Shown: positions 765 to 64,000, counted from the stretch's first letter. The stretch: 64,000 bases of DNA from Guillardia theta CCMP2712 (GCF_000315625.1 NW_005434667.1:248707-312706), one strand, 5' to 3'. Made by a program: numbers and translations. Notes: generated from the letters alone by a model not told the origin.

Positions 765-3700
765 ATGTCCAAGATGTTGAGGTTATCCCAATCCATCTTA
801 CCCCTACTTGTTATCCTCAAGCTTGATTATGTTGGATCGACGTCGTACTGGACCTCCAAGGACGTTTCTTCTGGTCCTGCCGAAGGAGGAGACTTAATAA
901 GAGTACAGGGATCAGGGTTTGCTCTCATCCCTGAGCGAGAGATTTATTGTCGCTTCACTATCTCAAATGTACAGGAGCAGTCGCTTGCAGATTTCGTTGA
1001 CAACTCAACTGTTGTTTGTAAAACACCTCTTTGGCAGCATGCTGCCGCAAATGCCTCTTTCTCCCTCTTTTCTCAATCAAATTATCCTATTCTTTACACG
1101 GGCATTGGTCATGATTGGTTTTTGTACTTTGCAAATCTTCAAGGTTTGTCTCAGGTCAGTTCGGGTCCAGCAAGTGGCGGTTACAACCTTACGGTTTATG
1201 GATTCGGCCTCGATGTGAATGATGCTGGGAATTATCATTGCTTGTTTGAAGCTGGTGGAAGTCAAATGTCCACTTCTGTCGTAATTTCAAACAGCTCAAC
1301 GGCGTTCTGCGTAGCGCCAGCATGGGGTTTGGATCACTATGGTACAAAAGCCGTCGGAGAATCGCCCATGAACTTAGTTTCAGCGGTGAACGTTTCTGTG
1401 ATACATCTTAACACAAGTCTGCCGTGCGGGAGATCTCCTTGTCACTTATCATTCTCCTTCTACTCTCTATGGAAAGGATTAACGATCCCTGGCATCAACA
1501 CAGCGTTGGTAGCTTCACTTGTTGGTGGCCAAGAAATCATAGTTGAGGGTTGGGGGTTCTCAAAGACTGCGAGGTACAGGTGTGAGTTCGTTGATGGGTC
1601 AGAAAGGCAATGCTCGGCTGCGGTGTTCGCTACCTCCCCGAAGGACGTAAGGTGTCTAACACCCTCCTGGACGCATGGAGACTTCTCTGCACATGTTTTC
1701 CTTAGGACTGTGAATGAGTCATATCCAGATGATTGTCAGCCGGGGAATATTTCTTTCCTGCTGTCAGTGTAAAACTGCAGATCATAGCGGGTGTCACGAA
1801 CATCAGTGCAATTTCATCGCCTGCTTCGGGGGGAAAAGAAATCTTGATTCGGGGTGTAGGTTTCAATGCAAACTCGACGTACACCTGTAATTTTGAAGAC
1901 TTCATCGTGAATGCAAGCTTTGTCGATGAAATGCTGCTGCGTTGCATATCTCCACCCTGGTACAGAGAGTCGCGCTCCCTCACTCTCAATGTCTTCACAG
2001 AGAGCGGCAACGCCTTGCTGGGCTGTAGCAACTGCTTGTTCACTTTCTACGAGACAGTAGCAGATGTTATCAGTATGAGTAACCGCTCAGAGGGGCCTGC
2101 AACTGGAGGTGGAAACCTGACTGTAAACGGTTATGGGTTCCACTTGCACGATCGCCAGTATACTTGTGTCTTTTCTTCGGATCTGTGGGAGGATTCTTTG
2201 AATTCACAAGCAAATGTCATCTCTCACATGCAATTGTCATGTTCGTTGCCCTCCTTGTATGGAAAGTATTCTGCTGGAATTGTGCGAATCTCTCTTCAAA
2301 GTAGCAATGGAACTGTTGCCTTTCAACCTGGCATTCATGTCCCATCAGAATATATCTCTTTATGTATCGTGGATTCCTGTACCTTTCGTTATTTAGCTTT
2401 GTGGCATTCTCTGGAACCAAGGCAGCTCTGCGCAACCGGAAATGAACTGATTTCCATTCACGGGTTGGGTTTCGTCTCAAATAATATAACTTACATGATT
2501 CAATCACAAAACGCTTCACAATTAACATCGGAAAACTGTAATGTTGTAAATGCTACTCTACTTCTCTGTAAAATTCCTGCACTTGCTAGTACATACAGCA
2601 ACTTATCGTTGCAGGTATTTCAAGGCTCAGAAAGTCTTGATGGCTCATTTTTGGACAAAATTGATGTGATTCCTTGCTGGTATTCTTTTAATGTTTCACA
2701 TGGACCATCTATAGGAGGGGTTTCAATTGAAATTCTTGGGGCAGGCTTCATGGACCTTTATGATCTTTCTGGAAAGATGTTTTCTACCACAACGGAGGTC
2801 AATATGACAATATATGTTCTAAATCCCTTTCGATTGTTCTTCATCACTCCAAGTTGGCCTGGCGTTGAAGAAAATGCTGTAGTGAACATTAGGAATTCAC
2901 TGTTGGACGAGATTCAATATGATGGCCCTCTCGGACAAGACGTTTTTCAATTTCAACGCTGTTGGTTGACAGTCCAACCAAGTTCTGTTCCGGCTTCAGG
3001 TGGCACCACAATTACTCTCGCAACATTTGCTATGAATCCTTTTGTTAATCTGTCTTGTTCCTTTGCTGTGAACTCAACTCGAATGTATTCTGTGGCACGC
3101 CGAATTTCCTCTGATTCAGTCGAGTGTGAGGTCCCTGAATGGGGAGCAAAATACACAGCTTCTGAGGTGGTGCTGACCTTGTTAGATTCATCGAATACGA
3201 CTATTCTGTTTTCTGAGGTCCTGGACTCGTCTTCGTCGAAAGCGTTGAACATTTATCAGATTTTCAATGGATCTCAGACAGCCCCAAAATCTTTTCACGT
3301 GACAGGTGAGGAGACCATTCGAGTGTATGGTTATGGGTTCGGAAAGGGAGATCGGTATATTTGTAGGTTCATATTGCAGTCAATGTTTGAGGTCTGGTCG
3401 GAAGAAAGCCTTGCACTTAGCACGACCGAGCTTGTTTTCAAGACAAAGTTTTGGAATCATTCTGCAGTCACGAATGCGTTGATTCAGGTCTTTTGTCAAT
3501 CATGCGGCAGCAGTGCACCTCAACCGATAGCTGATTCTAACCAACAAGTTATCGCGTTTCATGAAATCGTGACCAGCATCTCGCCTACCAAAGGTTCAGC
3601 TCGGGGAAGTGAGGTGATAACTGTCCACGGCAGCGGATTTTCAATGGAGTTTTCGTATGTTTGCAAGTTCGGATCACTTTCGGTGAAGGCGACTGTCATG

Positions 3701-6700
3701 AGCTTAAATGAGCTGATATGCTTGAGTCCAACACTGCGTTATGAGGAGGAGGGAATCTTTCCATTCATAGTCCAACGGAACGATTCTTTGAAGATAGACC
3801 GATTCGTCTTTGTAAATTTCACTGACGGCAACATGCATTATGAGGTCGGACCTGATTTGACTTTCAAGTATTTCAGCGAATGGCTGACCTTCAACCCTTC
3901 CTTTGCCGACAGACTCGGTTACATCCCTGTCCCAGAATGTCCCAAAGTGTACTTGCACGGCTTTGGATTCCAACAAGGAATGAAGTATCAGTGCATCATA
4001 TCGATGGGAACTCGGATTGCGACTGCTAGGGCGAACTTTGTGAACACGACGATAATCGAGATGATCCCGCCGGAGTGGGACCTGGTGACTGATTCGCATC
4101 GATATGTAACCAACAAAACAAATTTGACCTTGAGGAAGGCTTCCATCTCTTCAGAAGCCGCGTTTTGGTCGGATGTGTATGGTGGGAACGGCTCAACGTT
4201 GCCAAACCGCACGGCTCTGTGGATTGTGCAAATAAACAAACGGCCAGCTTACGATCTTGTGCAACGGAACTTGACGACTATAGTTGCAATAGAGAGCCAG
4301 GACATGATTAGGATCGAGTTTGCAACCAACTTGAGGAGCGGGGTCGACGGCAATCAGGAGCAGGTTCAGACTGAGAGAGACCAGAAGGTCACTTTCGAGG
4401 TCGCTAAAGGCTATTCTCGAATGTTTGAAGTTACTCCAAAGATAGACACCAACGGAATCCTGTCGTTCAAGGTCTGGCCTTATTCCTTTGGTAATACACG
4501 GATCTGTGTCGTTCTGCGGGACGATGGAGGCAAGCTTTTCGGAGGGATCGACGCTACAGAACCGAGGTGTTTTGATCTTATCGTAAACCCCAAATACCTG
4601 GGAGATTTCTTTTCCTTCGCCCAGCCTTCGTTGGAGATCTTGGAAAACTCTGGGATACAAGTGTTGGATCGATTCTTGATCAAGAGTCCCATGGGCCTCT
4701 ACAAAGATATTCTTCTCAACTTCTCTGCTGCAGGAGACAGTGACTTCTTCGAGACTGGACCTTTCGTCTCTGAGTTTGGAAGGTTGACGTTCAAGTGCTA
4801 TCCTTATGTCTACGGCACCACCACCATCTCTGTGTACCTCTCTTACTACAACTCTTCGGACGCACAAACGTACACGCACCACCAGGATCTGGTGTTGAAT
4901 GTGACTGCGGTCAACAACCAGCCGTCATTCACACTGAACGAGTCCAGGGCTCATATAGAAATTATCGAGAACGAATGCATTGCTGAACAATGCAGTTTTT
5001 CCGATCTAATCGTGTCGAAGTATTCGGGTCTGCATGATCTTAAAACAACCAGCCAAATGTTTGACTGGGACGAAAGCGATCAGAAAATGACGTTCCAGTT
5101 CGATCATGTGTTGGACACTGTCTTCGAGAGTATTCCTGTGATGAGCATCGATGGAAAACTTTCTTTCAAGCTCCTTCCAAACGTTTTTGGCAACTTTACG
5201 TTGTCGTTGACCCTCAAAGATGATGGTGGTACGGATCATGGAGGCGTTGACACCTCGGACCCTCAACAGATCACGATCTCCATCAAACCAAGGAACAATC
5301 AGCCGACTTTCAAGTTAAATTGCCCGGTCGAACAATGGACTCTGAATTGCTCAAAGGATTGCTCGAGCAACATATCACGTGGATGCTCTTCAAGAATCAA
5401 AATATCAGAGAATTGCATTGATTGCGAGCCAGGTCATCGCATAGTAGACGGATGCTCCAGGCATTATTTCATCCAAAGCTTTGCAGTAGATGTGTTTGCC
5501 TCAGCACAAAACCTGAAGAACGAGAAGGACCAACTTCTGTCCTTCCTCTTCGATCCCTTCACACCCAGACCTGGAACACCATCGTCCATGCTGACCTGAA
5601 CTCCAGTGGGTACCTCTCATTATGCCTCAATTACCGAAAGCATGGTACCGTGACATTCCAAGTGTCCCTTCAAGACAACGGGGGAACCGCAAATGGCGGG
5701 GTAGACACGATCGGCCCCATCTTCCTGACTATCCGTGTAGAGCCTGTCAACCAGCCCCCCAGCTTCAAGGTGGCTGCCCTGGCTGACTTCGGGGCCAACG
5801 TCCTACACCTGTGGACATCGAGCGGGCAGTCGACGGTAGAGGGCTTTCTCGTAGATATCCTCAACGGACATGCCGACTCGAGCGGCAGTGACCTGGAGGC
5901 CGTACAGTCTCACACATTCTACATAGAGACAGACCTGGCCTACTTCGTTCAAGGGCCGAAGATAGACGCCAACGGGACGCTGACGTTAGAGGTGAAGGCG
6001 GGGATGAGCGGGGAGGTCAACATGAGCATCACGATGGCGGACGACGGGCGGACGGACGACGGGACGGTGAACCCCGAGGACCCGGGGTGGAGGGGCCTCA
6101 ACGTGACACAGATCTGCAAGGTGGTGATATCAGACGGGTACCTGAAGCTGTCAGGGGCGGAGATGCCGGGGATGTACAACTGGAGCGAGCGGATGGGAGA
6201 CGCGATGAACCTGTCTCGCTTCCTGGGAGTAGGCCGGGAGTACGTGAGGGACGGGGGGAGTGAGTACGAGGTGACCGTAGGTAGCGTGACGGGGCTGGTA
6301 GAGGCGTACAGGCGGGCGTATGACGCGATCGAGGGGAGGAGGTACGTGCTGCCGTCAGGGCGGGGCATCGAGAACGTGACGCTGCGGCGACGCAACTACG
6401 GGCAGTCAGCGTCGCTGAAGGTGGCGGAGGCGGGGATCACGGTGGTAGGGCTGGAGTACGACGCGAGGCATCCGCTGGTGAGGGAGGGGTTCTTCTACGA
6501 CATTATGGAGCCGGAGAACACGACGATGGACCTGGACGGGAACTCGGTGATCTCGTTGAGGGTAGAGGCGGTAAGGTACAAGCGATATCCAGAGGAGACG
6601 AGCTGGAGGGAGAATGAGGGAGACGGGGGGCTATTTGTGGAGGACAAGAACGTGAGTCGAGTAAGCACGAACTGCCATCCAATCTGTCGGAACGCGACGC

Positions 6701-54586: not shown

Positions 54587-54686
54587 NNNNNNNNNNNNNN
54601 NNNNNNNNNNNNNNNNNNNNNNNNNNNNNNNNNNNNNNNNNNNNNNNNNNNNNNNNNNNNNNNNNNNNNNNNNNNNNNNNNNNNNN
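54587..54686. other. Assembly gap (100 N)
   Basis: N run. Confidence 0.99.
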
Positions 54687-57140: not shown

Positions 57141-57525
57141 GCTGAAGCCGAGCTGAGAAATTTTCAGGTAATTCTGCCGGACCAGTCCGTCATGACACCA
57201 GCTTCGACCACCATCACCAACCAGGTCAGAGCTCAGCAGGAGCCCAGCTATGAAAGCGACTGATCGCAGCCCACAGCTCCTGGATCTGCTCTTGCAGCAT
57301 GTGCTCGAGAGCAGCACTGAGTTGTGACTCTACGAGCGAGGTTGAAGGAACAAGCAAAAAGAAGATGATGAGACGTGAAACGACCAGGCAGAGGACCCGC
57401 TGCCGTCTGCCGACTTGGTAATGAATCTTGAAAGTATGTCGATAGATTCAACAGAGGTTACAAACACTCCCTCAAGGATTTTCCGCATCGCTTCACTCAG
57501 ATGCTTGACTGTTATCTTCTGTTAT

Positions 57526-58020
57526 CCTGAGCGGGCGCAGCGGGCGCCGAGACCGAGACCGCCATTGACGGCGACGATGCCCAAGGACCCCGTCGCGGGG
57601 GAGCAAGCAGGCGAGCGCGGACCAGCCGCGAGCATCCCAGTGGCATCGAGCTCTCCGGAGGCATCAGACGTCACAGTGATGGACGGAGAGGCTTCGCCAG
57701 CTCCTCGACGGCCTTCAGCTCCACTCTTCGTCGGAGTCAGGCACTTTCTACCTTATGCAGGTTACTTTTGGTCTTGTTTTGTTGTGTGTGTTTGTGCAGC
57801 TTCTCGCTGTGCGCTGTGTGCATGCAGGTTTAGCTTGTTCCTGCTTTGTTCTGCTTGAGGAACTTTTTACCTTCTGCGAGTAAACATCCTCAGACTTATG
57901 CAAGTAAAACTCTGGCGTCGAGACCTCCGGCGAAAACTCGACAAAGTCCGAGGAGGAGGTTGTTGCACAGCCTCCATCTCTGCTCATTTTCCTGAGCGGG
58001 ACCCGAGCCACTCCCGCTCA
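57526..58020 (-). mobile_element. Older diverged retroelement fragment interrupted by antisense 3'-end fragments (~57742-57890)
   Basis: 57566-57740 and 57920-57960 resemble 60000-60270; the sequence between them is a diverged copy of the element 3' UTR in the opposite orientation. Confidence 0.7.
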
Positions 58021-58112
58021 GGGTGTTGCGCCGCAACCAGACCCTACAATGCCAGCCCACGCGGGAAGCCACACAAGCAGAGAGGGGCAAGCGGCACAGC
58101 AGGGGACGTGAA

Positions 58113-58193
58113 CTGTGCGCTGTGTGCCTGGAGGTTTAGCTTGTTCCTGCTTTGTTTTGCTTGAGGCACTTTTTACCTTCTGCCAGTAAATCC
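58113..58193 (+). mobile_element. 81-nt 3'-terminal fragment of the CRE-like element
   Basis: Ends in GCACTTTTTACCTTCTGCCAGTAAATCC. Confidence 0.85.
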
Positions 58194-58414
58194 GTCTCTT
58201 ACAGAGTGGCTCAGGTCTCGCTCAGGAAAATGAGCAAAGATGGTAGACTGCAAGACCCTATCCTGCGACTTGAGCGAGTGTGTCCTGCGGCTGTGCAAGG
58301 TGAGGATATCACGCTGCTGATCGGTCAGCGCAGCGCGAGCATGCACATGGCGAGGGAAGACGCGCATGACAAGAGGAGTCACATTGCGCTGCGCAGGCGG
58401 AGCAATAAAGTGCT

Positions 58415-58933
58415 CTTGGGCATTGCTGCGGCGTCGCCGCCGTCACGGGCGGCTACCACTGACTCGGCTACCGCTGACTCGGAGGCTAGCGAGGAGGACT
58501 ACCTCGAGCGGTACCGTGTTCCAGTGTCCAGCCTCCCTCCGTCCGCTGCCCCTGGCGGACCCCCGGGCAGCGCCGGCTCCTTGTCGGCGGCTGCCCTTTC
58601 TCCGTCCGCGGCCGCCCGCTTTGTGGCGGCAGCGGACGTCTCGACTGACAGTGGTCAGTCGGCTGCCTCCGGGTATCGCGTCTAAGGGATTTTATTCCTC
58701 CTGCATGCTCCTGCTGCTTGTTGCTTGATTGCCTGACCCTTCGGCTGCTTGTCTGCGCGGCTTCGCGCTTGGGCTGGCGCTGCCGCGTCTGGGTGCCAGC
58801 AGTGCTGGATCTTTTCGGGCTTGTGTTTTGTGTGTGATTGTGCAGCTTCTCGCTGTGGACTGTGTGCCTGGAGGTTTAGCTTGTTCCTGCTTTGTTTTGC
58901 TTGAGGCACTTTTTACCCTCTGCCAGTAAATCC
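58415..58933 (+). mobile_element. 5'-truncated CRE-like element copy on the plus strand
   Basis: Near reverse complement of 59480-60033; ends CCAGTAAATCC. Confidence 0.85.
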
Positions 58934-59476
58934 ACTATATGCATGAGACGAGTCGACGAGAGCGCGCAAACCAGGGATGTATCCACTATTGAGTGTACCA
59001 CAGATGCCGGGGGGCAATCATCAGGCATAGCAGCCGGGGCAGGTGGGATCGCCGCGCCATCTGCAGCCGGTGCAGGAGCCCTCACACGACGGTAGAGGAT
59101 CGCTCCAGCATTATGAACGAAGTCGTGCGCCTCAACGAAGAAGGTCGCCAGAGGATGTTTCTGGGCACGGAGAGATCTCGAGCAGTGAACGTCCAGGCTA
59201 TGAGGAGAGGGCAGCGTCCGGGACATTGGCTGGTCAGAGTACCAAGCGAGGAAGCGAGCGATAGCCGTATAGTAAACAGCGGGGTGTAGACCATCAGAGG
59301 GCGTGAACTTAACTCGTCNNNNNNNNNNNNNNNNNNNNNNNNNNNNNNNNNNNNNNNNNNNNNNNNNNNNNNNNNNNNNNNNNNNNNNNNNNNNNNNNNN
59401 NNNNNNNNNNNNNNNNNNTCTAGCAGGTCGGGATGCGCGGCGAGGTACTGCGAGGAAGGCCAGCGGTGGTGATAGC
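58934..59476 (-). mobile_element. Internal ORF fragments, probably the RT-to-zinc-knuckle linker of the element, flanking an assembly gap (59319-59418)
   Basis: Open frame GLHPAVYYTAIARFLAWY... and LSPPLAFLAVP, resembling linker motifs of CRE-clade ORFs; bounded by element 3' ends on both sides. Confidence 0.5.
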
Positions 59477-61516
59477 ATAGGATTTACTGGCAGAAGGTAA
59501 AAAGTGCCTCAAGCAAAACAAAGCAGGAACAAGCTAAACCTCCAGGCACACAGTCCACAGCGAGAAGCTGCACAATCACACACAAAACACAAGCCCGAAA
59601 AGATCCAGCACTGCTGGCACCCAGACGCGGCAGCGCCAGCCCAAGCGCGAAGCCGCGCAGACAAGCAGCCGAAGCCCATGCGCGAAGCCGCGCAGACAAG
59701 CAGCCTAAGGGTCAGGCAATCAAGCAACAGGCAGCAGGAGCATGCAGGAGGAATAACATCCCTTAGACGCGATACCCGGAGGCAGCCGACTGACCACTGT
59801 CAGTCGAGACGTCCGCTGCCGCCACAAAGCGGGCGGCCGCGGACGGAGAAAGGGCAGCCGCCGACAAGGAGCCGGCGCTGCCCGGGGGTCCGCCTGGGGC
59901 AGCGGACGGAGGGAGGCTGGACACAGGAACACGGTACCGCTCGAGGTAGTCCTCCTCGCTAGCCTCCGAGTCAGCGGTAGCCGAGTCAGTGGTAGCCGCC
60001 CGTGACGGCGGCGACGCCGCGGCAATGCCCAAGGACCGGCGTGACCCGACCGATGCCGGGGAGGAAGCAGGCGAGCTCGGACCAGCAGCAAGCACCCCAG
60101 GGGTGTCGAGCTCTCCGGAGGCACCCGACGTCACAGTGAGGGACGGAGACGCCTCCGAGTCGCCAGCTCCGCGCCGATCGTCGGCGCCACTCGACGTGTT
60201 TCCCCCATCGGAGTCGGAGACCTCCGGCGAAGACTCCTCCTCGGGCGACTCGACAAAGTCCGAGGAGGAGCTGTCCTCTGGCTCGAGAAGTGCTTGCGCC
60301 CGCAAGGGCGTCATGCGCCTCGCACCAGACAAGAGCGCCTCCAGCGTCAGCTGCATAGTGAGGCGCTGATAGGTGGCGGCGCGTTTGCGAGCCAGGACCT
60401 CAGCAGCAGGGCCGTCATCAGGCACGAAGTGCCGACCAAACGCCGAGCCGCATCCTCAAGAGGCATCGAGCGCTGAGCAATGATGTCCGCGAGATACCAG
60501 ATGAAGCGGAGGGTGTCAGGATGCAGGGTACCGTCCGTCGAGATGGCAAGAGGGATGAACGCTCGAGGAGGAGTAGTCATAGCATATGCAGCGCGATGTT
60601 TGCGAATCTTCTCAGACGCTGCAACATGGAGGGCGTCGAGGTTGACCTCCCCCCACTTGGTCAGGTCGGCAGAGCTACCAATGTAAGGGTGGACCAACGT
60701 CACGTCCGCCATCAAGCCCTCGTACTGCTCGGACCCTCGATCGCGGATTCCAGGGATGTGGATATCGCCCTTCATCTTGCGGCCATGAGGATGGGAGGGT
60801 ACCTGCCGTCGAGAACGAGGATCCCCCACTGTTTTCACTTTTTACCTTCTGCCAGTAAATCCTATACTGTATCGATGACACTCTGAAGACCAGCTTCGTT
60901 CAGCATCGACCGAATCGTACGAGTAAGGTTGTCATGCGCCGTGGGAAGCTTGGAGGATCGGCGTTTGCAGGTCTGGAGATGATGTGCAGCAACGGAGGGG
61001 TCGAGCTCGCGCTGACATCCATCACATTCCGTCGGACACTGCCGTGGTATTTCTCAAGCGCCAGGTGGACAGAGAGGTCAAAGAGACGAATCTGTGACTG
61101 GACCCACGGGAGAAACGGAGATGACCCCTGGAAGAAGAAGCGGAGCTTCTGAAGATGGCTCGCCCTCACCAGCGTCTTGAACATGAAGCCATGCTGGACG
61201 AGCCCGAGCTTCGAGAGCTCTTCGTTGAGGGTAGAAACCTTCGCTCGGAGCTGACTAGCATGAAATCCATCCGTGCCGATAGGCAGGCCGCCAAGTGTAA
61301 TCCCGCCAGTGACGACCTCGAAGTGAAGAAGTTGAGTCTTGAGACGGTGCTTAAGGCTCTTCTTCAGCTGCGAGAGATCAGGGTGTTGATGCCAGGAGGG
61401 GATGTAAACTTTCGACTCGCGAGGTTGAATCTCTAGCTTCAGATCAGCCAACATGTACTTCTTCATAGCGGACGTAGCTGCAACGGCATCCTCGAGTGGA
61501 CCGACAAGTACGATGT
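59477..61516 (-). mobile_element. CRE-like non-LTR retrotransposon, 5'-truncated and internally deleted (copy D)
   Basis: RT C-terminus IVLVGPLEDA..LKLEIQPRESKVY..GITLGGLPIG..F; CCHC knuckle CDGC-x10-HHLQTC then AHD; RLE KGDIHI..ADVTLVHP..AASEKIRKH..FIPLAISTDG; 3' end AGTAAATCCTAT. Confidence 0.88.
60833..60865 (+). mobile_element. 33-nt antisense insertion of the element's own 3' end, with 5-bp TSD (ACTGT)
   Basis: Empty site is present in copy B at 63077-63081. Confidence 0.93.
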
Positions 61517-61719
61517 ATAGGATTTACTGGCAGAAGGTAAAAAGTGCCTCAAGCAAAACAAAGCAGGAACAAGCTGAACCGGCAGGCACACAGTCCACAG
61601 CGAGAAGCGGCACAATCACACACAAAACACAAGCCCGAAAAGATCCAGCACTGCTGGCACCCAGACCGTCGGACGCGGCAGCGCCAGCCCAAGCGCGAAG
61701 CCGCGCAGACAAGCAGCCT
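61517..61719 (-). mobile_element. ~200-nt 3'-end-only copy (copy C)
   Basis: Matches 59477-59670. Confidence 0.9.
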
Positions 61720-61720
61720 T

Positions 61721-63593
61721 ATAGGATTTACTGGCAGAGGGTAAAAAGTGCCTCAAGCAAAACAAAGCAGGAACAAGCTGAACCGGCAGGCACACAGTCC
61801 ACAGCGAGAAGCTGCACAATCACACACAAAACACAAGCCCGAAAAGAACCAGCACTGCTGGCACCCAGACGCGGCAGCGCCAGCCCAAGCGCGAAGCCGC
61901 GCAGACAAGCAGCCGAAGGGTCAAGCAATCAAGCAACAAGCAGCAGGAGCAGCCTAAGGGTCAGGCAATCAAGCAACAAGCAGCAGGAGCATGCAGGAGG
62001 AATAAAATCCCTTACACGCGATACCCGGAGGCAGCCGACTGACCACTGTCAGTCGAGACGTCCGCTGCCGCCACAAAGCGGGCGGCCGCGGACGGAGAAA
62101 GGGCAGCCGCCGACAAGGAGCCGGCGCTGCCCGGGGGTCCGCCTGGGGCAGCGGACGGAGGGAGGCTGGACACAGGAACACGGTACCGCTCGAGGTAGTC
62201 CTCCTCGCTAGCCTCCGAGTCAGCGGTAGCCGAGTCAGTGGTAGCCGCCCGTGACGGCGGCGACGCCGCGGCAATGCCCAAGGACCGGCGTGACCCGACC
62301 GATGCCGGGGAGGAAGCAGGCGAGCTCGGACCAGCAGCAAGCACCCCAGGGGTGTCGAGCTCTCCGGAGGCACCCGACGTCACAGTGAGGGACGGAGACG
62401 CCTCCGAGTCGCCAGCTCCGCGCCGATCGTCGGCGCCACTCGACGTGTTTCCCCCATCGGAGTCGGAGACCTCCGGCGAAGACTCCTCCTCGGGCGACTC
62501 GACAAAGTCCGAGGAGGAGCTGTCCTCTGGCTCGAGAAGTGCTTGCGCCCGCAAGGGCGTCATGCGCCTCGCACCAGACAAGAGCGCCTCCAGCGTCAGC
62601 TGCATAGTGAGGCGCTGATAGGTGGCGGCGCGTTTGCGAGCCAGGACCTCAGCAGCAGGGCCGTCATCAGGCACGAAGTGCCGACCAAACGCCGAGCCGC
62701 ATCCTCAAGAGGCATCGAGCGCTGAGCAATGATGTCCGCGAGATACCAGATGAAGCGGAGGGTGTCAGGATGCAGGGTACCGTCCGTCGAGATGGCAAGA
62801 GGGATGAACGCTCGAGGAGGAGTAGTCATAGCATATGCAGCGCGATGTTTGCGAATCTTCTCAGACGCTGCAACATGGAGGGCGTCGAGGTTGACCTCCC
62901 CCCACTTGGTCAGGTCGGCAGAGCTACCAATGTAAGGGTGGACCAACGTCACGTCCGCCATCAAGCCCTCGTACTGCTCAGACCCTCGATCGCGGATTCC
63001 AGGGATGTGGATATCGCCCTTCATCTTGCGGCCATGAGGATGGGAGGGTACCTGCCGTCGAGAACGAGGATCCCCCACTGTATCGATGACACTCTGAAGA
63101 CCAGCTTCGTTCAGCATCGACCGAATCGTACGAGTAAGGTTGTCATGCGCCGTGGGAAGCTTGGAGGATCGGCGTTTGCAGGTCTGGAGATGATGTGCAG
63201 CAACGGAGGGGTCGAGCTCGCGCTGACATCCATCACATTCCGTCGGACACTGCCGTGGTATTTCTCAAGCGCCAGGTGGACAGAGAGGTCAAAGAGACGA
63301 ATCTGTGACTGGAAACGGAGATGACCCCTGGAAGAAGAAGCGGAGCTTCTGAAGATGGCTCGCCCTCACCAGCGTCTTGAACATGAAGCCATGCTGGACG
63401 AGCCCGAGCTTCGAGAGCTCTTCGTTGAGGGTAGAAACCTTCGCTCGGAGCTGACTAGCATGAAATCCATCCGTGCCGATAGGCAGGCCGCCAAGTGTAA
63501 TCCCGCCAGTGACGACCTCGAAGTGAAGAAGTTGAGTCTTGAGACGGTGCTTAAGGCTCTTCTTCAGCTGCGAGAGATCAGGGTGTTGATGCC
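61721..63593 (-). mobile_element. CRE-like element, 5'-truncated (copy B)
   Basis: Near-identical to copy D (the 220-aa ORF translates identically); lacks the 33-nt insert and has an 11-nt deletion near 63312. Confidence 0.9.
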
Positions 63594-63595
63594 TC

Positions 63596-64000
63596 TAGGA
63601 TTTACTGGCAGAAGATAAAAAGTGCCTCAAGCAAAACAAAGCAGGAACAAGCTGAACCGGCAGGCACACAGTCCACAGCGAGAAGCTGCACAATCACACA
63701 CAAAACACAAGCCCGAAAAGATCCAGCACTGCTGGCACCCAGACGCGGCAGCGCCAGCCCAAGCGAGAAGCCGCGCAGACAAGCAGCCTAAGGGTCAAGC
63801 AATCAGGAAACAAGCAGCAGGAGCATGCAGGAGGAATAACATCCCTTAGACGCGATACCCGGAGGCAGCCCGACTGACCACTGTCAGTCGAGACGTCCGC
63901 TGCCGCCACAAAGCGGGCGGCCGCGGACGGAGAAAGGGCAGCCGCCGACAAGGAGCCGGCGCTGCCCGGGGGTCCGCCAGGGGCAGCGGACGGATGGAGG
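63596..64000 (-). mobile_element. CRE-like element 3' portion running off the window (copy A)
   Basis: Starts TAGGATTTACTGGCAG on the + strand; matches 59478-59920. Confidence 0.9.

Follow-up and report, generated by a model that had tools for sequence, protein, structure and literature searches.

Nested self-insertion as the probable origin of a polarized retrotransposon array in an internal island of the Guillardia theta genome

The 64,000-nucleotide stretch of DNA from the cryptophyte Guillardia theta CCMP2712 analyzed here (the window; C7:248707-312706, on a parent scaffold of 1,226,574 bp) ends, at positions 59477-64000, in a head-to-tail array of copies of a retrotransposon that lacks long terminal repeats (non-LTR). 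A single ~5.7-kb element of this kind, which encodes a reverse transcriptase (RT), a CCHC knuckle and a restriction-like endonuclease (RLE), underlies an island of copies lying between genes, and the array is the readable left half of that island. Nested self-insertion within one such island per scaffold, combined with local duplication, is the best explanation of the array, and we put its probability at roughly 0.7. On this explanation the element would use target-primed reverse transcription (TPRT) to insert, almost exclusively within the one island that its copies form on each scaffold, in random orientation and with heavy 5' truncation at insertion. Nesting in the same orientation as the host would set the intact 3' end of the insert against an internal point of the host copy, so that a head-to-tail pattern with different internal positions would follow.

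The island spans ~12.8 kb, from about position 57,440 of the window to about 70,200 in window-equivalent coordinates (C7:306.1-318.9 kb), and the array lies ~306-312 kb from the nearer end of the scaffold. Element-derived sequence makes up 94% of the readable bases of the island. Immediately beyond the window, positions 64001-67948 (C7:312707-316654) are a run of 3,948 N, probably a sized scaffold gap because N runs of 100-2996 bases are common in other islands; past it, element fragments continue in the locus to the right of the window, L033 (in which 2016-3823 corresponds to C7:316722-318529), as far as L033:4200. Islands of this family often contain N runs of between 100 and ~3,000 bases, and the window itself has others at 59319-59418 and 54587-54686; the fine structure of any island therefore needs long-read confirmation. 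The assembly behind the window comprises 87.1 Mb in 669 pieces, with many N gaps. Close protein matches, at 89-97% identity, carry GUITHDRAFT names of Guillardia theta CCMP2712.

Four minus-strand copies in the array share one 3' terminus, at 59477, 61517, 61721 and 63596, as a preliminary description of this DNA had stated. Element coordinates, here and below, derive from two natural copies (C21:645304-646949 and L037:4520-8591) rather than from a consensus, and give a length of ~5,674 nt. The 3' end of the element is fixed (...CCAGTAAATCCTAT) and carries no poly(A); in the four copies it reads ...CTGCCAGTAAATCC followed by TA(T)(A/G), their starts being the reverse complement of ...CTGCCAGTAAATCCTA(T). 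The absence of poly(A), also reported previously, extends to 170 termini from related loci, which end alike in AAATCC and then mostly TATA or TATG. Equally accurate was the statement that each terminus meets a different internal position of the element with 0-2 extra bases at the junction, these positions being about 2962, 5479/5480 and 3085. Of the four, 'copy 1' is a composite and 'copy 3' is a near-identical mosaic duplicate rather than an independent copy. The claim that all 3' ends face the gene-rich side does not stand, given plus-strand termini at 57884, 58193, 58933, 60862 and L033:2010 (the last of them ~4 kb past the end of the window) and genes on both sides of the island. Polarity of the telomeric type is likewise contradicted, both by the presence of both strands in the island and by the genome as a whole, where a 21-nt terminus motif, searched with at most two mismatches, occurs 824 times in 400 forward and 424 reverse orientations (reversed control, 0). 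The polarized array is no evidence for a telomere-like system.

At the first junction, both the insert and its host can be followed. The host is a minus-strand copy, Z, whose 3' part (58203-59470) descends from element 4100 to 3430 through collinear BLAST fragments at 58203-58418 (element 4100-3885), 58942-59309 and 59419-59470; it is broken by an insertion, I1, and, at 59319-59418, by a 100-N gap in the assembly. A' (59477-61041, minus strand, element 4194-5674), a 5'-truncated copy of ~1.56 kb that forms the 3' two-thirds of 'copy 1' and has a 7-nt filler at its 3' junction, sits inside Z at element ~3437. It is bounded by a target-site duplication (TSD) of GTGGT, with Z reading GGCCAGCG-GTGGT on its left flank and GTGGT-ATTTCTC on its right flank, at a site where the canonical element has one GTGGT; moreover, short Logan contigs from three public runs hold the uninterrupted element, joining 59465 to 61044. 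An internal deletion common to copies 1 and 3, considered as a reading of position 61041, was rejected, this position being the 5' junction of the nested insertion.

Beyond A', Z continues on the minus strand (61041-61516, element 3437 down to 2962) and stops where a 6.5-kb inserted block starts, its last bases being ...AAGTACGATG and those that follow TATAGG (...ACGATG, then TATAGG). The canonical element at this break reads ...ACGACG and then TTGTCAGC. Past the N run, Z resumes as TTGTCAGCATAGG at L033:2016, and the portion of the minus-strand host found there (Z-right, L033:2016-2830) covers element 2962-2156. The canonical continuation, CGTTGTCAGCATAGG, is found at L033:2016 and also as a loose end at 61513 in four public runs; in addition, a private variant, GTACGA where the canonical element has GCACGA, is common to the left portion of Z and to Y, a copy adjoining Z-right. 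Because Z picks up again past the gap at an unchanged element position, the whole of 61517-68015 (window-equivalent) is inserted in Z. A' is shown to be nested in Z, and the block to be inserted in it at element 2962; nested self-insertion, which the preliminary description had entertained among other possibilities, is upheld at this junction by the reappearance of the missing 5' half of the host. As a separate observation, the canonical element at 61044-61513 is covered by contigs (939 and 1,471 nt) of a run that is taken, by a guess, for RNA, a hint that the element is transcribed, subject to that guess about the nature of the run.

Nested insertion is also the dominant process genome-wide. 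An iterative parse of 216 kb of island sequence, taken from ~38 loci that in many cases are slices of islands, identified 68 simple nested insertions; in 55 of these the 3' end is complete. Their TSDs are mostly 4-8 bp long, and their insertion sites are spread over element coordinates 1244-5673, roughly in proportion to the host sequence available. Orientation relative to the host is evenly divided (34:34), and with random orientation a same-strand run of three or four termini is unremarkable. Half of the 198 fragments that keep the 3' end are under 100 nt (median ~100 nt). Simple nesting, together with 7 two-fragment events, explains 40 of 80 head-to-tail junctions, and many of the others fall at locus edges, at gaps or at target deletions rejected by the tolerance of the parse (for example, C21:11379-11815). 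The TSDs and the 5' truncation are footprints of TPRT, and the 3' ends are defined and free of poly(A).

These islands are discrete, internal and about 2-30 kb in size. Among the 150 DNA matches listed, each of ~29 contigs has one interval of at most 16 kb, and on the six scaffolds with known lengths (C4, C7, C12, C21, C32 and C77) the distance of the islands from the ends ranges between 45 kb and several hundred kb. Mapping of the terminus against scaffold ends, which the preliminary description had proposed with a chromosome-end system in mind, points the other way: exact matches on C1-C15, among those listed, fall within a single interval per scaffold, and that cluster is internal.

The block inserted in Z has a more intricate structure. 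On its left side three minus-strand pieces follow one another: B (61517-61719), a 3'-end copy of 203 nt (element ~5480-5674) primed at the left side of the Z break; C (61721-63593), in which element 5674-4194 (to 63252) is joined to Z-type sequence of element 3437-3085 (63252-63593); and D (63596-64000, element 5673-5270), in which yet another copy shows its 3' end before running into the N stretch from 64001. On the far side of the gap lies E (L033:1949-2010), a plus-strand copy that ends in CCTAT and is followed by a filler, ACACAC, before Z-right begins. Z-right is in turn followed by Y (L033:2830-3823, element 2998-2156), which holds a 140-nt insert at L033:3644-3783.

Copy C is not an independent copy, because it reproduces the junction at which A' is nested in Z and differs from A' plus Z by 1 mismatch in ~1,630 nt outside its terminal ~290 nt; elsewhere, among the matches listed, no genomic sequence spans that junction, and other matches break there. 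Its terminal ~290 nt differ from A' at ~20 positions plus indels, its tail is TATA where that of A' is TATG, and it has an 11-nt deletion. From these features, C is read as a mosaic of local origin whose terminal ~290 nt come from a different source. It would have arisen locally from the composite of Z and A', either through a read-through transcript with a template switch near the 3' end, or through DNA-level duplication or gene conversion. Duplication at the DNA level demonstrably occurs in the C7 island, to judge from Y and Z-right: the two form an 842-bp tandem duplication (99.9% identical, with 1 mismatch in 778 nt), have a common start at element 2156 and are joined head to tail with a GCA microhomology. 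The junctions between B and C (element ~5479) and between C and D (~3085) resemble ordinary 3' junctions; under nested self-insertion they would be deeper levels of the same nest, with their partner halves in the N run.

Several points weigh against nested self-insertion as a sufficient account of this block. The duplicated pairs, Y with Z-right and C with A' plus Z, are interleaved, which pure nesting cannot produce, and the mosaic structure of C needs an extra step, be it a template switch, recombination or gene conversion. The partner halves of the B/C and C/D junctions are unreadable, as they would lie in the N run at 64001-67948. At its right end, the block finishes with the 3' end of the plus-strand copy E rather than with the remainder of B, and simple nesting alone therefore does not explain the ends of the block. 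Near-identical duplicates that sit beside gaps could, moreover, be partly misassembled, and in the public data used, four runs of short Logan contigs most of which fit several places, no contig bridges a locus-specific junction.

In another possible mechanism, both DNA ends made by the endonuclease prime reverse transcription on the 3' ends of element RNAs and the RT then jumps serially from template to template; the block in Z would derive from a single compound event or a small number of them. One strand would have primed B, C and D as a template-jump concatemer, and the other would have primed E at a blunt break, with read-through transcripts of already nested copies serving as templates. 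Consistent with this, the break in Z is blunt and lacks a TSD, and on either side of it an element 3' end points outward (B on the left; E, with its ACACAC, on the right). Two compound insertions elsewhere, L004:1501-3770 and L037:3654-8591, each pair a long copy with an inverted tip of 26-37 nt inside a single TSD, again with the 3' ends directed outward. Compound events are rare all the same (~3 against 68 simple nested insertions), and as a description of the block we hold this mechanism to be possible though on the unlikely side. More generally, template jumping and double-ended priming may be a minority mechanism and are a possible origin of the block that runs from B, C and D to E. If this reading were true, the block would document, in vivo, symmetric and double-ended TPRT together with template jumping by an enzyme of the R2 superfamily, perhaps in the centromere cores of a cryptophyte.

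Several apparent signs of double-ended priming were set aside. Inverted 3' fragments are in excess at 5' boundaries (17, against 4 in a control), an asymmetry that ordinary nesting produces as well; apparent double-ended pairs in L005, L010 and L024 are simple nested insertions; and an apparent case in C32 was dropped for want of an adjacent contiguous host.

A related reading, a template-jumping concatemer, would derive the block from a single target-primed event at the Z break (element 2962), in which ~200 nt of one RNA (B) were copied before the RT jumped to the RNA of C and then to that of D. The template of C would be a read-through transcript of the composite of Z and A', and no partner halves would be found on the far side. 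The RT of R2 jumps between templates in vitro and adds untemplated bases. Serial template jumping by a modified retroelement RT is the subject of a paper (10.1101/2021.04.30.442027). Within the islands, L015:148-1048 contains copies of 40 nt and 855 nt arranged head to tail and bounded by a single TSD (GGGAG, about 5-8 bp); a 6-nt filler separates the two, and a third TSD is absent. The different source of the terminal ~290 nt of C is what a template switch would leave, and the blunt, TSD-less ends of the block and the compound insertions in L004 and L037 also speak for this reading. The scarcity of compound events applies here too, and the three junctions in question look like ordinary 3' junctions, with tails TATA, TATA and TAGA; the far side, where the decision between concatemer and nest would fall, lies in the unreadable N run. 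We consider a concatemer of this sort unlikely.

Rearrangement at the DNA level (unequal exchange, replication slippage or gene conversion), or an artefact of assembly, would make the polarity of the array a by-product of duplication. The near-identity of Y and Z-right, their common 5' end at element 2156 and the microhomology between them speak for a contribution of this kind, as does the near-identity of C with A' plus Z over a shared nesting junction. The island at C36:421309-427783 supplies another instance: three tandem 243-nt units (L025:775-1496; C36:422683-423403) each comprise element 5432-5674, have identical ends and are separated by 2-nt spacers, and the same island contains an inverted segmental duplication of the array. 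Tandem units and inverted duplication together imply that islands undergo amplification at the DNA level or, alternatively, repeated jumps on a single short template. The frequency of N gaps in islands is compatible with an artefact, whereas the continuity of the junction sequences in the assembly speaks against a pure artefact. As for rearrangement, C starts exactly at the 3' terminus of the element, with a tail of its own and a divergent 290 nt, and plain duplication of A' would give neither. Taken as the explanation of the array as a whole, rearrangement or artefact is unlikely.

Healing of a chromosome end by serial addition, as in the HeT-A/TART arrays of Drosophila and as the preliminary description had suggested, could draw on nothing beyond the local run of 3' ends on one strand and the halt of readable sequence at 64000, and it is refuted for this assembly, with next to no probability left to it, by the internal position of the array in a 1.23-Mb scaffold, the continuation of Z past the gap at an unchanged element coordinate, the genes on both sides, the presence of termini on both strands locally and genome-wide, the absence of telomere-like arrays from the C7 island in a Tandem Repeats Finder (TRF) search, and the distance of islands from the ends of the six scaffolds of known length.

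The left edge of the island (57440-58200) consists of old, diverged fragments in both orientations that are 78-91% identical to the natural reference copy, with plus-strand 3' termini at ~57884 and 58193. I1 (58415-58941, plus strand, element 5153-5671) is a 5'-truncated copy nested in Z, which is contiguous across it at element 3885-3888; at the level of sequence its TSD amounts to at most 1-4 bp, and its 3' end is directed away from the supposed gene-rich side. A' contains I2 (60833-60865, plus strand), a 33-nt micro-copy of the 3' tip of the element flanked by a 5-bp TSD, ACTGT, at 60828-60832 and 60866-60870; it is missing at the counterpart position, 63077, in the duplicate C. To the right of the island, at a distance of ~4 kb, L033:8008-9447 holds a gene for a papain-family cysteine protease (Peptidase_C1, E 4e-56).

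The architecture of RT, CCHC knuckle and RLE proposed earlier was confirmed at the level of sequence profiles. In natural copies the Pfam RVT_1 domain scores weakly (26 bits, just below the 29.6 cutoff), and searches of solved structures with single sequences, either a natural open reading frame (ORF) or P0004, gave no match, R2 being reached only by a profile. P0004 is an uninterrupted ORF of 1,511 amino acids that comes from a Logan assembly, where its contig measures 4,961 bp, and is 70% identical to the protein of the G. theta element; it presumably represents the same family in another organism and is a useful full-length natural reference. Profile A1, built from P0004 and distant homologues found in an exhaustive search, has R2 as its best match among solved proteins (9nl3_A, 7e-31; 9dou_A, 1.3e-30; 8gh6_A, 3.7e-17), with L1 ORF2 at ~1e-13. 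The C-terminal stretch of the profile (positions 689-851) matches residues 990-1143 of 9nl3_A, which comprise CCHC and RLE (i-Evalue 2e-6), and the motifs of the RLE are in register with those of R2 (GDI to PDL, vvDVTlv to vvDVTv, and KirKh to KvrKy). The knuckle motif, CDGC-x12-H-x4-C, is present in L035 and in P0004. On these sequence features, the element is classified as an RLE-type non-LTR retrotransposon of the R2 superfamily.

Several lake-water, aquatic and runoff metagenome runs from 2023-2025 hold ~45% of the sampled 31-mers of window positions 59400-64000. This implies that near-identical copies of the element family are present in those samples, for which a relative, a spike-in, a food alga or contamination are possible reasons.

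Likeness to R2 (9nl3, 9dou, 9nl2 and 8gh6) extends from the RT core, for which R2 is the best solved match, and the aligned CxxC...H...C knuckle and GD(I), D-V-T and K motifs, to a fixed 3' end that lacks poly(A), a varying number of extra bases at 3' junctions and extensive 5' truncation. Single sequences do not match R2. Membership of the R2 clade in the strict sense was rejected: insertion sites are spread over the element's own copies instead of occupying one site in 28S ribosomal DNA (rDNA), and a motif scan, made without a search for Myb, detected no N-terminal C2H2 pattern either in P0004 or in the 5' region of natural copies. The clade of CRE1/2, SLACS and CZAR also combines RT, CCHC and RLE with tail-less 3' ends; CRE, SLACS and CZAR insert in spliced-leader genes, and telomeres are where Cnl1 and MoTeR, assigned to the CRE clade in the preliminary description, reside. 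The Guillardia element differs from them in occupying internal islands and in having its own copies as targets. Protein searches yielded unnamed or 'hypothetical' sequences. With HeT-A, TART and TAHRE of Drosophila it has in common that copies with varying 5' truncation follow one another head to tail; the Drosophila arrays lie at chromosome ends and are of uniform polarity, whereas the Guillardia island is internal, contains both orientations and is built of nesting flanked by TSDs.

The nearest analogues are Zepp of Chlorella and Coccomyxa and ZeppL-1_cRei of Chlamydomonas, which, like the Guillardia islands, form one localized, self-nested cluster per chromosome or scaffold. Zepp and ZeppL belong to the L1 clade and have an apurinic/apyrimidinic endonuclease (APE)-type endonuclease and poly(A) tails, in contrast to the C-terminal CCHC and RLE, the fixed terminus without poly(A), the cryptophyte host and the small islands of the Guillardia element. 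The latter works like Zepp, and it is not a member of the Zepp family. According to PMC8226300, which refers to Higashiyama 1997 and Blanc 2012, the green-algal clusters, one per chromosome and with the element near-absent elsewhere, consist mostly of 3' ends, 5'-truncated and nested into existing copies, and are considered centromeric; furthermore, a preprint reports an association of ZeppL with CENH3 (bioRxiv 10.1101/2025.03.28.645958).

By analogy with Zepp and ZeppL, the presence of one internal island per scaffold makes the islands of the Guillardia element centromere candidates. A full-text search, with Repbase outside its scope, found no literature on cryptophyte centromeres or on this element. 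The hundreds of natural junctions that the islands contain, among them micro-copies of 11-40 nt, a few compound insertions and mosaics, could be mined for template switching in vivo. A small, internal and almost pure island on each scaffold gives a concrete candidate for the centromere of Guillardia theta; if it proved to be one, this would be a second, independent case of a nest of long interspersed nuclear elements (LINEs) acting as a centromere, built by the RLE rather than the APE superfamily, and would suggest convergent recruitment of self-targeting LINEs.

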